Virus record (IMG/VR): IMGVR_UViG_3300037805_000644 | Location: 1-64,000 of that record | DNA: 64,000 nt | Strand: one strand, 5' to 3' | Part shown: piece after piece, positions 1-30,500 of the stretch | How positions within the stretch are numbered: position 1 is the stretch's first letter | Layout of the letters: the number at the start of each line of letters is the position of its first letter | Notes under the pieces: generated by a model | What the model saw: only the letters and a program-made list of their open reading frames with translations | Told to the model about the DNA's origin: nothing | The model's database searches: none | Program-made: the position numbers and the translations under genes

Positions 1-693
1 ATCGTAGAAGGGCTCATCGGGTCAGGGAAAACCACCCTCACCCGGGAGTTGGGTGCCGCCCTTGGGCCGAATACCCTGACGCTTTTCGAGCCTGATGAGA
101 AAGACGCCAAAGGAGCCTGCAACCCGTACTTGGCGAGCTACTATAAGGACAGTGCTCGCTGGTCGTTTACCATGCAGGCACACCTCCTGTCGGAACGCTA
201 CCGGATGCACATGCACGCCCAGTGGCACGCCATGCAAGACCACGGTGACGCCATCCTTGATCGCAGCTTCTATGGAGACACGGCTTTCGCCCGCCTCCAA
301 GTCAAGCTGGGTCTGATGTCCCAGATGGAGTTCGACACCTACAGCCGCCTTTACGACGGGATGACCGCCACCGTAAAGCTCCCCACGATCTGTGTGCGGG
401 TCCTTGCATCCCCCGAGGTCTGCAACCGCCGAGTGGCCTCCCGGATGACCAAGGAGACCGGTCGGACGTGTGAGACCGCCATCGACTTGGATTACCTCAA
501 GGGTCTTGACCTGGAGATCGACCACATGGTCAACGTCCTGGATGCTCAGGGGGTCATGGTCATCAACGTGCCTTGGGATCAGGACCGAGCCACACCTGAG
601 TTGCGGGCATCCACGGTGGAGGAGTTGGTGGCTCGTATTGGCGCCTATGCCCCCTCAGACCTGTTCCTGGATCTCCACCGCCGGGCTCTCTGA
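1..693 (+). CDS. Deoxynucleoside kinase (dNK family), 5'-truncated by window edge
   Basis: Frame is open from base 1: IVEGLIGSGKTT P-loop, then EP, Q, and ILDRSFYGD motifs. Confidence 0.9.
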   Translation: MVEGLIGSGKTTLTRELGAALGPNTLTLFEPDEKDAKGACNPYLASYYKDSARWSFTMQAHLLSERYRMHMHAQWHAMQDHGDAILDRSFYGDTAFARLQVKLGLMSQMEFDTYSRLYDGMTATVKLPTICVRVLASPEVCNRRVASRMTKETGRTCETAIDLDYLKGLDLEIDHMVNVLDAQGVMVINVPWDQDRATPELRASTVEELVARIGAYAPSDLFLDLHRRAL

Positions 694-22871: not shown

Positions 22872-23753
22872 TTAACTACTATGTGGTGGGCTACCGTTAC
22901 CTCTTTTATCTGGCCCCATGAACATTTCGCAGAATTCAGGGATAGCGATCCTCATCCTTTTTCGGGCAATCTCCAGGTATTTCGGGGAGATATCCACACC
23001 TAAGAAGTCTCTGAGGTTATTGCCGGCAGCAACGCCTGTGGTGCCACTGCCACAGAAAGGGTCAAGAACCAGATCACCCTCTTTGGTGAACAGCTTAACG
23101 AAAAAATCAGGAAGGGCCACTGGGAATGCGGCTGGGTGTCCTAGATTTCGGGTCTCCGTCGGGAGGTGCAGGACATTGCTCGGGAAAACCATTTTCCGGT
23201 CTTTCCAAACCCCCGTGTTTTTCGTGTACCCTGAACCCGTCCCAGACATCACCTGACCAACGCTCTCCCCTTGTGTCCAATCTCCCACCGGAACACGGAC
23301 ATTATCCTGGTACATCAAGAACTTGCGGTTCTTGTTAAACTGTAGGATCCGTTCCCAAGAATCCCTGAAACGATTAGGCCATTTACCCGGTGTGGTGTTC
23401 TTTTTGTGCCAGATGAATTCCTCAGTCCAAATCCACCCCTGAGAGCGCATCGCCTGGATCAAATCCAGAACGTAGGTATGCCGCTCCCCGCGATGCACAT
23501 GCTCCTTGATGTTCACAAGCAGGGTGCCCGAGTCCTCCAACACCCTGTAAAGTTCCAAGGAGACATCCCTCCACCACTCCACGTAATCGTTTGCAGGGAT
23601 GCCCCCGTAAGTGGCTTTCCGCTGAGTTGCATAGGGAGGTGAGGTGAAGATAAGCTGGACACTCCCACTCTCAAGCCCTCCCAACGCCAGGGGCACAGCC
23701 CCTTCAATCAAATCCCACTCAACCACGCTTGTCTCCTTCGGAGTTAGCCGCAT
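22872..23753 (-). CDS. Complete beta-class N4/N6 DNA methyltransferase
   Basis: FTSPPY catalytic motif, HPAAFP, VLDPFCGSGTT SAM-binding motif. Confidence 0.92.
   Translation of the reverse strand: MRLTPKETSVVEWDLIEGAVPLALGGLESGSVQLIFTSPPYATQRKATYGGIPANDYVEWWRDVSLELYRVLEDSGTLLVNIKEHVHRGERHTYVLDLIQAMRSQGWIWTEEFIWHKKNTTPGKWPNRFRDSWERILQFNKNRKFLMYQDNVRVPVGDWTQGESVGQVMSGTGSGYTKNTGVWKDRKMVFPSNVLHLPTETRNLGHPAAFPVALPDFFVKLFTKEGDLVLDPFCGSGTTGVAAGNNLRDFLGVDISPKYLEIARKRMRIAIPEFCEMFMGPDKRGNGSPPHSS
22876..22901 (-). promoter_or_regulatory. Recurrent promoter-like motif
   Basis: GGTAAC-N14-TAGTAG. Confidence 0.7.
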
Positions 23754-24362
23754 GTACAGGTTTCCGGGCCGTCAGAAAGGGCTCCCAGGAGGGGCGCACG
23801 GCTGTGCCGTAACCATCCCAGAACTGGGCCTCCTTTGTGGTGGGTTCAGTGATGTACTGCACCCCTGCCGAACCGGCATCCCCACTGCCAACCAGGGTGT
23901 CGAACCCCCGACCACCCTTGCGCTTAGAGTTCGGGCGACTGGAGGGGTTGACCCCCACCGGCGTCCCCTCGAAACCCAACCGCTTGTCGATGGATTTGCT
24001 GATGTTCAGGTTTTTAGGGAAGCCTGTGCCGTACCCCCAGGCTTCGAGGCTGAGGTCCGTGAACCCCGCCTCCTCAAGGACCTGTGCCAGCCGGTGATAG
24101 GTGCGGGCGGCCGAGAACACCTTGACCACCCCGCCAGGCTTGAGCTTCTGGTAAATGAGGGTCCAGAGATCTGCATCGAAAGCGATCCCCGAGCGGTCCC
24201 ATTTCTTGCCCATGAATCCAATCTCAGGTATTATTACTCGTAGGGGGGATCGGTGATGACAGCGACGATTGAGTCGTCGTCCAGCTCCAGCAGGCGCACT
24301 TGGCAAGCACCCAACCACAGCAGGAATGTCAGATCCCCCCTACGAGCCTTATTTTCCAGCAT
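23719..24362 (-). CDS. Methyltransferase fragment A (catalytic half), interrupted by an 11-nt gap after DPPYE
   Basis: ..DDDSIVAVITDPPYE [TAATAATACCT] (E)IGFMGKKWD..LKPGG..RTYHRL..YGTGFPK..WDGYGTAVRPSWEP..ARKP; 209 aa if the gap is bypassed; no FxGxG. Confidence 0.75.
24237..24346. repeat. Perfect 15-bp inverted repeat of the DPPYE codons
   Basis: CTCGTAGGGGGGATC (24237-24251) / GATCCCCCCTACGAG (24332-24346). Confidence 0.9.
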
Positions 24363-24374
24363 CGAGGGTTCCTC

Positions 24375-25175
24375 ATGAAAGTTCAACGCACATGCCCAAT
24401 ATGCGGCAAGGTCTACAAAGCAGACAGTACCCGGCTCAGGCATGGGAGGCAGACCACCTGCTCTCGTGCTTGCTCTTACTCGCTCCGGGGGGGGAAACGA
24501 GCTACCTCCACTGAGATCACCTGCACCACCTGCGGGAGTTCTTTCACACGCCCCCCCAGCCAGATGAAATCACGCCATGGGGGATCTTTCTGTTCAACTG
24601 AGTGCCATTACAAAGGTCGGGGTCTCGGCCACGTCCAGAGAATCGTGGAGGACGGATATGACCTCACGCCCGAGGGGCGTGCCTCTCTTTCCGTTCGCCG
24701 CAGGGAGGCCAACTTCAAACGCAAAGCCGAAGGCAGATACGGCCACACCGAGGAAACCCGAAAGAAACTCTCAGCCTCAACCGCTAAGGCCATTGCTGAG
24801 GGCCGGATCCCACGAATCTCCAAGTTTGAGCGGGAGGTGGGGGTGGTGCTGAGGAGCTTGGGGGTCAAAGCCCAACCCCAGCACGGCATCCGGGATGCTC
24901 AAGGGAGATTCCGTGCGGTGCTGGATTTCTGGCTGCCCGAGCTGGGGGTAGGTGTGGAAGCCAACGGCACTTTCTGGCACGCCGACCCTCGGGTTTTCCC
25001 CCAAGGCCCGGAGCACGCCAGCCAAAAGCGAACCGCAGAGAGGTATGCCCGGAAAATGGCTCTGTTAAATCTGCGGGGGGTTCCCGTGATCGAGGTGTGG
25101 GAGAAAGATTTCAGGGAGGACCCTAAGGGGGCCGTTCAGGATGCCCTTCGAGGTCTCAACGCCCCTGGTGATTGA
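24375..25175 (+). mobile_element. Vsr/DUF559-like homing endonuclease with Zn-ribbon repeats and NUMOD3
   Basis: CPICG..CSRAC, CTTCG..FCSTEC, HTEETRKKLS, SKFE..LDF..VEANGTFWH..IEVWE. Confidence 0.85.
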
Positions 25176-27608: not shown

Positions 27609-28406
27609 TTATTCACGGTAAGGCTCAAAGCCCTCCTGGGCAACCCAGAAATCCTTGGAGGTGGGGGAAGCAATCAGCTCAGGAGACACGAGGCCATACC
27701 CGTCATCTCCCCAGGTCACCCCCCAGGAGTTCTCGATGAGGAACATGCCGTCCACATAGCCCACGATAACGACGGCATGGAGACCTACCCGGTCCTCTCG
27801 GGGGACCGGCTTGAGGGGGACCAGGGGACCTTTGCTCTTGTAGTGCTGGTACCAGTTGTCCCCCACATTGGTGCCGAACACCACAGGGTTTCCCGCCCGC
27901 AAGCAGTTGATCACCTCGGTGACCCGAGCGGCACCCGTGGACCGGATTTTGAAATAGCTCTCGATCTTGTGGAGGTAAGCAACCCGCAAAGACATGAAGC
28001 TCGGGGGGGTGTTCACCTTGTCGAGGTCGAACGGCCAGTTGGCCTCAGGGGGCACACCGAACCGACGCAGCACATTGAAGGCGTGGCTGACATACGTCCC
28101 CTCATCGTTGTGGGTCTCGGGGGGGCTCATCAGCTCTCGGGCCAGGTAATAAACGGCCAGGCGACTCAGATCCACATGGGCTGCCAGGCCGTGCTTCTGG
28201 ATGCGCTTGATCTCCAACGCCTTGATGCAGGCGTTGGCTACACAAGAGTTGGACCACCTCTGGTCATGGCGGGGCCCCGAGAAAGGGCGGAGGTCAGCAT
28301 CGCCGGAATCCTCATAAACCATTTGTGCCTTGAGGCTGTCCTCATACGACCAATGGCTAGGGTTGTCCGGTTCCTCCCGGAACCCCTTCAACGTGATCGG
28401 GTTCAT
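27609..28406 (-). CDS. Papain-like (C1) cysteine peptidase
   Basis: DQ..SNSCVANA, HAVVIVGY, ENSWG..WGDDGYG. Confidence 0.9.
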   Translation of the reverse strand: MNPITLKGFREEPDNPSHWSYEDSLKAQMVYEDSGDADLRPFSGPRHDQRWSNSCVANACIKALEIKRIQKHGLAAHVDLSRLAVYYLARELMSPPETHNDEGTYVSHAFNVLRRFGVPPEANWPFDLDKVNTPPSFMSLRVAYLHKIESYFKIRSTGAARVTEVINCLRAGNPVVFGTNVGDNWYQHYKSKGPLVPLKPVPREDRVGLHAVVIVGYVDGMFLIENSWGVTWGDDGYGLVSPELIASPTSKDFWVAQEGFEPYRE

Positions 28407-28656
28407 CGTGGATCCTCACCTGTTTGAAATAACCAGAAGCCCCGGGGAGTACCCTCTCCAGCTCGGGGATAGGGCAACCCTTGGCGCAGAACGACTTGGA
28501 GCATCCTGCCTTATGGACCAGGATCACATTGGCACCAAACCCACCAGAGGGCAAGCGGCTGCCATCAATGTTGACGGCACCTGTCCCGTGGGTTTCAACA
28601 TTGGCGACGATACTGGGCTCGCCGAGGGGCTTGCGGAGCATGTGGATCACGTACAT
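28357..28656 (-). CDS. Methyltransferase fragment B (central region)
   Basis: LRKPL..SIVANV..HGTGAVNIDGSR..ANVIL.H..C..GCPI..L..GASGYF. Confidence 0.75.
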   Translation of the reverse strand: MYVIHMLRKPLGEPSIVANVETHGTGAVNIDGSRLPSGGFGANVILVHKAGCSKSFCAKGCPIPELERVLPGASGYFKQVRIHDEPDHVEGVPGGTGQP

Positions 28657-30500
28657 CAGTCTTCCCCAAACATGGCGTCAAACAGGTCGGGCTCTTCGGG
28701 ATCAGGCTCGCTTTCGTGCCTCTGATCAGTTGCCAGATCGAGCTTGCGGTACCCGGGGAGCCTTTGGTCCCAGTGCTCAATGCGGTTGGTGGAGATCTCC
28801 ACGTACTCCGGGGTCATGTCGATGCCCGTGAAATCGTGGCCTGTCCTCAAGCAGGCAACTCCTGTGCTGCCTGACCCCATGAAAGGGTCCACCACCCGGC
28901 CCCTTGGCACATCCCGCAGCAGGGTCTGCATGAGCCTCCAGGGTTTTACTGTGTTGTGACTCATCCCTACTGCCGTCTGAAACGTAGGGCAGTCCCGTAC
29001 CGTGAGGTTCCACACATCACCTTTGTAAGGGGTCGGGGTGATCCCTTGAACATAGGAGAGCCGGTATTCCACGCTTTCATGTTCCAGGATGGTGGGTCGG
29101 GTAGGTTTACGGCGCTCCTGCTCCCGGTCCAAGGCGTAAAAGCGCATTTGGTACGACGGCAGGGTCTCCTTGAACTTCCGACTCCCAATTTTGCCCGGCT
29201 GCGCCCCATAGCGGTGCAGGTTGCCCTTAGACCCCAGGGCCTCCCCCAGCAAACGCATCTGCGAGGCGAGATCTGGAGAGACGGTTTTAGCCTGGCGGTA
29301 TGTCCTCACCTTGCCGCCATCTCCTGCCATGTACCCCTCGAACACTGCTTGCCAAGTGGACCGCTGCCGTTGCCAGATCGTGGGGGGTAGCCGCTTGTTC
29401 GACGCCCCACACGGGGACCATTCCCGGAACTGCCCCCCGACCTCCGGGTCGAACCCGATGACCTGGACTGCCTTGGTTCCCTTTTTCGGGTACTCCCCCA
29501 GATTGAATCCCCGACCCTCAAAAAACCGACGAAGCCGGTTGATGTAGTCCGTCTCGTCCTGGTGGAGAGTGAACGAGGGGTACACGTTGGAACCGTGTCC
29601 CGCACGCTGGAGCACACCCTCTGCCAGCCACAACCCGAATACCCACCACCACTCATCCGGCCGGTCGTCCTTGATCCCTATGTCCACCAGCAGAGGGGTC
29701 ATCGTGTAATCCCCTCTGCGGATCGCTTGAGCCTCCACCCACCCCACGTTACCGCCGGTGATGTTCTTGCCTTTCCGGGTGGGCCTCCAGATGAGGAACG
29801 GGTGGTTGTCTGATGCCAGGGTGGTGTAGTTCGTCCCCTGCACTGCGATCTCGTACAGGTGGTCGCTAGTGTACGGGTGGTGGCTGATGTCCTCAATGGC
29901 GTGGAAACGCCCATCCGACCCCAACACCCGGTGGGCCAGGGTGACCTCAGAGATGGGCCGGTACCCTTGTTCTGTCATCACGAAAGCATCAGGGTGCAGG
30001 CAAGGGTGGTGATTCTTGACCCCCTGGGCCGTTCGGGAAGCCCCTGCCCGAGGGCTCTTGAGGCCGTCCGACCCTTCCTTACGCCCAGTGGCAGCGGCGC
30101 CAGTCTGCTCAGGTAGACCCTGGCACCCTGCCTCACGCTCAGCTCGGCTGACCTTGGCCATGTAGTGGAAAGGATCGGAGGCGTCATCGACCACCAGGAA
30201 CGTATCCCGGACCTGGAAGCCCCCGTCCTCCAGGTTGACCGCCCCCTTGTGCCCAATGGGGTTGTCCTCAGGGGCAACCACCATGAGGTGCGCCCCCGGC
30301 TTGAGGACCCTCAGCAGTTGGACGGTCATGGCCTTGTCAGGGGTCCCCACGACGAGGAGACCTGTTAGGGCTCCATCGGCGATGGAGCCCCAGTCCACCT
30401 TGGACATGTTGGGGATGAACACTGCCTCAAGATAGGGCTCGGGAGGGCTCAGGAACGTCCGTAGATAGTCGGACAAGCCCTTGGGGATAGGACGGCTCAT
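28656..30500 (-). CDS. Methyltransferase fragment C (SAM-binding half) with intein
   Basis: Degenerate LRVLKPGAHL..EDGGFQVRD; FHYMAKVSRAEREAG..NHHP|TVKP..VVDPFMGSGSTG; no DPPY. Confidence 0.85.
   Translation of the reverse strand: MSRPIPKGLSDYLRTFLSPPEPYLEAVFIPNMSKVDWGSIADGALTGLLVVGTPDKAMTVQLLRVLKPGAHLMVVAPEDNPIGHKGAVNLEDGGFQVRDTFLVVDDASDPFHYMAKVSRAEREAGCQGLPEQTGAAATGRKEGSDGLKSPRAGASRTAQGVKNHHPCLHPDAFVMTEQGYRPISEVTLAHRVLGSDGRFHAIEDISHHPYTSDHLYEIAVQGTNYTTLASDNHPFLIWRPTRKGKNITGGNVGWVEAQAIRRGDYTMTPLLVDIGIKDDRPDEWWWVFGLWLAEGVLQRAGHGSNVYPSFTLHQDETDYINRLRRFFEGRGFNLGEYPKKGTKAVQVIGFDPEVGGQFREWSPCGASNKRLPPTIWQRQRSTWQAVFEGYMAGDGGKVRTYRQAKTVSPDLASQMRLLGEALGSKGNLHRYGAQPGKIGSRKFKETLPSYQMRFYALDREQERRKPTRPTILEHESVEYRLSYVQGITPTPYKGDVWNLTVRDCPTFQTAVGMSHNTVKPWRLMQTLLRDVPRGRVVDPFMGSGSTGVACLRTGHDFTGIDMTPEYVEISTNRIEHWDQRLPGYRKLDLATDQRHESEPDPEEPDLFDAMFGED
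28953..30002 (-). mobile_element. Intein (350 aa) with LAGLIDADG endonuclease
   Basis: CLHPDAFV...MSHN|T; FGLWLAEG and FEGYMAGDG. Confidence 0.92.

Follow-up and report, generated by a model that had tools for sequence, protein, structure and literature searches.

A probable short ribosomal hop within a methyltransferase gene of a marine jumbo phage

In a marine jumbo phage, a DNA methyltransferase gene is interrupted inside its catalytic DPPY motif by an 11-nt untranslated insert that ribosomes most likely hop over. Inserts of the same type recur at the same position in about 20 other phage genes, in association with a putative selfish endonuclease gene. The element therefore looks like a second natural family of translational bypass besides that of phage T4 gene 60, to which it appears analogous, although it is far shorter and built differently. 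The evidence is comparative, with no protein or RNA data; a programmed hop is nevertheless considered more likely than not. The window analysed here is the 64,000-nt stretch from positions 1 to 64,000 of IMG/VR record IMGVR_UViG_3300037805_000644, a 222,939-nt contig from seawater that CheckV rates as 42% complete. The features of the locus, together with those of related loci, are collected in Table 1.

Table 1. Features of the interrupted methyltransferase locus and of related loci. Individual loci are denoted by L and a number; L283 is the locus of G001, a 402-kb phage contig with terminal repeats that is the nearest relative.
Record	Coordinates	Strand	Feature	Basis or remarks
Window	24375..25175	+	Putative Vsr-like (PD-(D/E)xK) homing-endonuclease gene, 266 aa, with an N-terminal Cys-rich DNA-binding module	Divergent from the methyltransferase gene, start codons 12 nt apart; 112 homologues of about 260 aa; weak Pfam MTES_1575 hit (E 5.7e-4, below cut-off); all invariant residues of the family alignment present
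Window	24370..24374	-	GAGGA, Shine-Dalgarno-like sequence	7 nt before the ATG of the first coding piece
Window	24237..24362	-	First coding piece, 42 codons (MLENK...ITDPPYE)	Ends in catalytic motif IV; profile positions 13-45; dN/dS 0.39 against G001
Window	24332..24346	-	5' arm of the stem, CTCGTAGGGGGGATC	In codons 6-11
Window	24237..24251	-	3' arm of the stem, GATCCCCCCTACGAG (the DPPYE codons)	Perfect 15 bp with an 80-nt loop; last base is the last base of the take-off codon
Window	24237..24239	-	Take-off codon GAG (Glu)
Window	24226..24236	-	Untranslated gap of 11 nt, TAATAATACCT	Begins with two in-frame TAA stops
Window	24223..24225	-	Landing codon GAG	In the frame of the second piece, +2/-1 relative to the upstream frame
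Window	24213-24211	-	Conserved ATG of FMGK	No good Shine-Dalgarno sequence precedes it
Window	23719..24225	-	Second coding piece, 168 codons plus stop (EIGFMGKKWD ... WEPFLTARKPV...)	Profile positions 45-202; dN/dS 0.17 against G001; ends where the whole half-methyltransferase subfamily ends
Window	24206..24234	+	Promoter-like site facing the endonuclease gene: TTGCCC, 17 nt, TATTAT	TTGCCC is antisense of the M-G-K codons, TATTAT is inside the gap; consensus match only
Window	22872-23753	-	Complete second methyltransferase (SPPY motif, PF01555, E 1e-44)	Overlaps the end of the half-methyltransferase by 35 nt
Window	28357-28656	-	ORF adjacent to the 614-aa ORF	Conserved in both jumbo phages
Window	28656-30500	-	Methyltransferase-like ORF, 614 aa, with a 349-aa insert	Very probably an intein
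L283	3811-5247	-	Half-methyltransferase of G001	Insert of about 320 aa
L283	5416-5658	+	Degenerate remnant of the endonuclease gene	Start MVERTYPGCG...
L283	6668-7854		Two adjacent ORFs equivalent to window 28357-28656 and 28656-30500
L283	7057-7854		Orthologue of the 614-aa ORF, 265 aa	Uninterrupted
L183	3001-3792		Endonuclease gene inside the methyltransferase gene	One of 25 such loci (L183-L217)
L284 (phage Donovan)	1396-3781		Endonuclease gene inside the methyltransferase gene
L263	5252-6226	-	Cys-rich nuclease-like ORF, 324 aa	Directly upstream of a full-length gap-bearing methyltransferase
L177	about 300-345	-	Junction without a matching landing codon

The interruption itself is confirmed. 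The 17-mer from GAG to GAG is unique in the window (0.03 expected), the insert has no template elsewhere in the 223-kb genome, and no family of AT-rich inserts was found. TATTATTA is one of only about 14 A/T-only runs of 8 nt or more in a genome of 61% GC. The sequence is identical in the JGI contig, an ENA 233-kb contig and a Logan 7.4-kb contig; the three assemblies agree over 8.5 kb, and the Logan contig spans the site at a word depth of 12.4 without variants. An assembler artefact can therefore be dismissed, although the three data sets probably derive from one sample and three further samples (X2-X4) do not cover the site, so that confirmation from independent samples or raw reads is lacking.

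Mycobacteriophage and metagenomic homologues of the methyltransferase are 365-480 aa long, read DPPYE, then Leu or Ile, then GFMGKKWD without interruption, and carry the AdoMet-binding motif I (FxGxG) at the C-terminus. A profile built from 57 of them (445 positions) matches the window over positions 13-202 with an E value of 5e-54, and both pieces share the Glu at position 45. The gene thus carries motif IV and motifs V-VIII of a beta-class N6/N4 DNA methyltransferase (PF01555-like), but its ORF ends at about position 202 and lacks motif I. No separate close C-terminal half is present in the 223-kb contig. In 155 of 158 homologous loci, DPPY and FMGK are exactly 21 nt apart in one frame, and removal of the gap restores the corresponding three-residue spacing between Y and F.

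Close relatives of the gene itself proved scarce. Protein-seeded scans of viral and metagenome contigs yielded nothing above 49% identity, with all hits uninterrupted; a search of 1.84 billion proteins gave at most 51%, and an exact 25-mer gave no hit. Informative relatives were instead found through homologues of the neighbouring endonuclease. In all three homologues that were first inspected, the same arrangement recurs: the endonuclease gene, a divergent ORF of 43-45 codons ending in DPPYG plus a stop, 9-12 nt, and then the rest of a methyltransferase. A scan with an alignment of the endonuclease and a search with a degenerate DNA pattern raised the total to 20 distinct junctions. The same pattern gave 0 hits in bacterial and archaeal genomes.

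In every junction, the codon after DPPY (X; Glu, Asp or Gly) is followed directly by TAA, TAG or TGA. Part of the set was retrieved with a pattern that required a stop, but the 7 loci found through the endonuclease without this requirement all have one. In most junctions, a codon with the same first two bases as X follows 2-9 nt after the stop, and exactly two codons and FM[GSN]KxWD come next. Take-off and landing codons covary: GAG/GAG occurs twice, GAT/GAC once, and GGN/GGN in most of the rest. There are two exceptions. L177 reads GGG TGA GTA CGC ATT, with no Gly landing codon, and is in frame, while L260, L261 and L272 have AGC where a GGN landing codon is expected; these loci may use read-through, tolerate a mismatch, or be defective. 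Counting the stop, the gaps are 5, 6, 7, 9, 10, 11 and 12 nt long and fall in all three frames, so that neither read-through nor a fixed frameshift explains the set. In L263, the downstream frame contains a stop between take-off and landing, which excludes a simple shift at the take-off site. Among the eight junctions encoding G-L-E, the landing codon and the next two codons differ only synonymously (GGA/GGC, CTT/CTG, GAG/GAA), whereas the gaps differ in both length and sequence; the coding constraint therefore begins at the landing codon, not at the downstream ATG. Downstream ORFs of 360-620 aa stay open in many loci, three of them with motif I.

The half-methyltransferase is itself a conserved architecture. 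In G001, the junction is GAG TGACTT GAG ATT GGA, a 6-nt in-frame gap, and the ORF ends at ..WEPFMVGYKPI, the same point as in the window. Twelve gap-bearing genes end at this point (..KPxWEPxxVGRKP), while another group (L260-L263) is full length with motif I. Between the window and G001, dN/dS is 0.20 overall at a dS of about 1.1, indicating that both sides of the gap have been under purifying selection in their respective frames. Two adjacent ORFs that are conserved in both jumbo phages carry parts of the family profile that the DPPY half lacks (positions about 193-224, and 316-431 including motif I) and have no DPPY of their own; the enzyme may be assembled from three polypeptides, although the partner that supplies motif I is not identified.

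A covarying stem accompanies the gap. The DPPYE codons are perfectly complementary to a segment in codons 6-11, one of only seven perfect inverted repeats of 15 nt or more with a loop of up to 120 nt in the genome, and the 181-nt fold of positions 24195-24375 has an energy of -71.5 kcal/mol (z -3.67). All 19 testable gap-bearing genes have a stem of 9-15 bp ending 0-2 nt from the last base of the take-off codon, against 3 of 128 uninterrupted and 1 of 25 endonuclease-split genes (Fisher 4e-21); as the loci are phylogenetically related, this p-value overstates their independence. In 15 distinct stems, the four synonymous third positions of the Pro, Pro, Tyr and X codons pair in 57 of 60 cells, with 2-5 pair types each; the upstream partner changes whenever the codon does. 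The 5' arm lies 14-21 nt upstream in some lineages and 80-102 nt upstream in others. Within the 10-bp core there are 10 G.U pairs in methyltransferase sense against 1 A.C (p 0.012), which favours an RNA structure in the methyltransferase mRNA, but the asymmetry disappears when outer positions are included, in a cruder and inconclusive measure based on longest-stem lengths (210 against 211). The stem persists where the endonuclease is absent or degenerate, and also where a different endonuclease lies upstream on the same strand. The latter is a Cys-rich nuclease-like ORF found upstream of full-length gap-bearing methyltransferases in L263 and in L260/L261, where it is open in frame with the first piece.

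The endonuclease belongs to a large family of proteins, some of which are annotated by JGI as Vsr and carry PF03852/PF04480, and whose Cys-rich N-terminus is shared with HNH and LAGLIDADG proteins. No PDB sequence match was found. [quoted passage not shown] (2009, PMC2677866). In 25 other loci, the endonuclease gene lies, antisense, inside the methyltransferase gene between DPPYxL and GFMGK, one codon from the gap position, and conserved extra tails flank the break (..LSNDGKAS.. on the first fragment, for example). Cultured Fishburnevirus mycobacteriophages have this form; in Donovan and its relatives, the annotated 'hypothetical protein' gene 58 is called on the opposite strand to the endonuclease match. 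Rfam detected no group I intron at gathering threshold in the window locus copy (L174) or in 19 endonuclease-split loci. Both arrangements interrupt the same conserved sequence, as the genome of a homing endonuclease requires for its own immunity and as shown for MobA and the T4 hop (Bonocora 2011, cited in PMC5009743).

The gap may also serve the endonuclease gene as a promoter element. On the antisense strand, the M-G-K or M-S-K codons read TTGCCC or TTGACA, and a -10-like hexamer lies inside the gap 17-18 nt downstream: TATTAT in the window, and TGnTATACT, TGnTATGCT and TGnTACTAT elsewhere. In L180, TTGACA, 17 nt and TGnTATAAC were read by eye. Short gaps in endonuclease-less loci have no such box. 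These are consensus matches only. In G001, only a remnant of the endonuclease gene is left, while the gap has shrunk to 6 nt and lost its promoter-like box, which fits the cycle of invasion, decay and loss of homing endonucleases.

These observations are best explained by a programmed short bypass inside a homing-endonuclease-associated cassette. Ribosomes would translate the first 42 codons, melting the hairpin on the way, and reach GAG in the P site with TAA in the A site. It is inferred that, while termination is slow, the 5' arm, already outside the ribosome, re-pairs with the DPPYE codons as they leave the exit channel; this zippering would drag the mRNA through the ribosome and detach peptidyl-tRNA-Glu from the take-off codon. 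The tRNA would re-pair with the identical GAG 14 nt downstream, and decoding would resume at ATT. The full helix requires the take-off codon to travel roughly to the exit, a distance that agrees with the observed displacements of 8-15 nt. The predicted product is one 209-aa protein with an intact DPPYEIGFMGKKWD motif and the junction peptide ...TDPPYEIGFMGK. Pairing of exiting mRNA has been proposed as a forward driver in gene 60 (PMC5009743; 10.1101/2022.08.31.505936; 10.1101/2024.12.09.627546); here it would be the principal, conserved signal. A pause at the Pro-Pro of DPPY might contribute. By analogy with T4 mobA/gene 60, it is further inferred that the insert exists because the endonuclease targets the uninterrupted DPPY-FMGK coding sequence. 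The sequence-only reading had inferred a compact hop of this kind from the one sequence, and this is supported by the related loci. Of the alternatives it listed, a recent inactivating insertion is disfavoured and split translation remains the main rival. It missed the covarying upstream stem, the adjacent endonuclease gene, the promoter-like box, and the fact that the product is a conserved half-methyltransferase lacking motif I.

The most serious rival, though an unlikely one, is a fractured gene without a hop, in which translation terminates at TAA, the second piece is made separately by re-initiation at the ATG of FMGK, and a 42-aa peptide associates non-covalently with the rest. In the endonuclease-split loci, both metagenomic and cultured, the two parts must be made separately, so covalent continuity may not be required; gene callers call the ATG-started 164-aa ORF, and split phage genes that stay functional are documented (PMC2677866). 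However, the endonuclease-split genes carry conserved tails at the break, for example ..DPPYELSNDGKAS.., whereas the gap-type ORF stops immediately with no tail, and separate synthesis would leave unexplained the matched and covarying codons, the synonymous-only change in the three codons before TTY-ATG, and the exact three-residue spacing. Matched triplets flanking an insert could also be target-site duplications. No dedicated nascent-peptide signal is evident for a hop, and folds local to the gap are no better than shuffles (z +0.87 and +0.65).

Still less likely is a selfish scar in a dispensable or decaying gene, with the insert serving only the endonuclease as target-site immunity and -10 box, and the hairpin acting as a 5' UTR element of the endonuclease mRNA. 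The missing motif I, the promoter-like box and the UTR hairpins described for this endonuclease family (PMC2677866) are in keeping with this; moreover, the window copy is the most divergent member, deviating at 19 of 79 highly conserved columns against 0-9 in homologues, and open frames persist easily at 61% GC. Such a truncated pseudogene is nevertheless disfavoured by the dN/dS across both pieces, by a terminus shared among 12 gap-bearing genes, several of which hold inferred inteins in frame, by the persistence of stem and gap where the endonuclease is degenerate or absent, and by the G.U pairs in the stem core. Removal of the insert before translation, as RNA or as DNA in part of the population, would tolerate any gap length, and a flanking helix could guide processing, but this is improbable: no known bacterial or phage splicing system removes 5-12 nt, a stop as first gap triplet and codon-level matching of the flanks are translational features, and the contigs show only the insert-bearing form. 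Conventional recoding or an assembly error is the least plausible. Read-through could cross the in-frame gaps of some relatives (L180, L182, L266, L268, L177), but the frames of the family are mixed, a -1 shift at the C run in the window gives DPPLRVIIPE and destroys the motif, and three assemblers agree on the sequence.

Natural programmed bypassing is known from very few systems (PMC5009743). In phage T4 gene 60 with its mobA cassette (Huang 1988; Bonocora 2011; Manning and Atkins 2022 preprint), a stop likewise lies directly 3' of the take-off codon, about 42-46 codons precede the gap, a homing endonuclease gene lies immediately upstream and is replaceable or lost while the gap persists, and the insert sits in a conserved coding motif that is uninterrupted in most relatives. 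The present gaps, however, are 5-12 nt rather than 50, with no stem-loop inside the gap and no evident internal SD; the take-off codon varies; the endonuclease is antisense, and the gap appears to hold its -10 box. The conserved structure is an upstream stem whose 3' arm contains the take-off codon, whereas the 5' stem-loop is reported as not conserved in the gene 60 family, whose published cassettes are all in topoisomerase genes (10.1101/2022.08.31.505936). Synthetic 'stop-hops' in E. coli (Weiss et al. 1987, as reviewed in PMC5009743), whose in-frame variants resemble L268 (6 nt), are low-efficiency laboratory constructs, and the review states that no natural in-frame stop-hop is known; here there is an added conserved stem, presumed stimulatory, and evidence of natural selection. 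The byp elements of Magnusiomyces mitochondria (Lang 2014; Nosek 2015) are mobile and also comprise many short bypassed inserts with matched flanking codons and a non-decodable first codon, but they are 27-55 nt, GC-rich, structured within the insert and scattered over many genes. In fractured genes with Vsr-like homing endonucleases (PMC2677866), apparently the same endonuclease family interrupts conserved motifs of phage DNA-metabolism genes and hairpins lie near the endonuclease start, but the endonuclease gene sits between the two halves, often with split inteins; in the window it sits upstream of an almost contiguous gene. No report of a methyltransferase hop was found in the literature searched. 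A second, independent phage family would show that the pairing of a homing endonuclease with a bypass is a recurring evolutionary solution, and its natural variants would bear on the idea that pairing of exiting mRNA drives forward sliding. It would also be a very small element, convenient for mechanistic and synthetic work. These genes are currently annotated as two ORFs or as pseudogenes.

More tentatively, the element may be a minimal, self-contained module for which a stop codon, a matched codon 8-15 nt downstream and an upstream zipper helix containing the take-off codon would be enough to make ribosomes hop. The bypassed nucleotides would double, on the other strand, as the -10 box of the endonuclease that spreads the module, so that one short insert would provide nuclease immunity, nuclease expression and a silent passage for the host gene.

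In G001 and several other gap-bearing relatives (L179, L197, L206, L265, L278), the half-methyltransferase has an intein-sized insert between W-x-Y-G and SGFPK (beginning CLSED and ending ITGN before S), which the window lacks; this would be a third selfish-element insertion site in the same small gene. The 349-aa insert in the 614-aa ORF begins with Cys, ends in His-Asn before Thr, and splits the HP|TVKP motif. As the G001 orthologue is uninterrupted, it is very probably an intein with a homing-endonuclease domain. Pfam detected no Hint domain in either of the two inteins, which are inferred from insertion alignments. Finally, where the window has its second, SPPY-type methyltransferase, G001 has a D12-class Dam-like gene instead.
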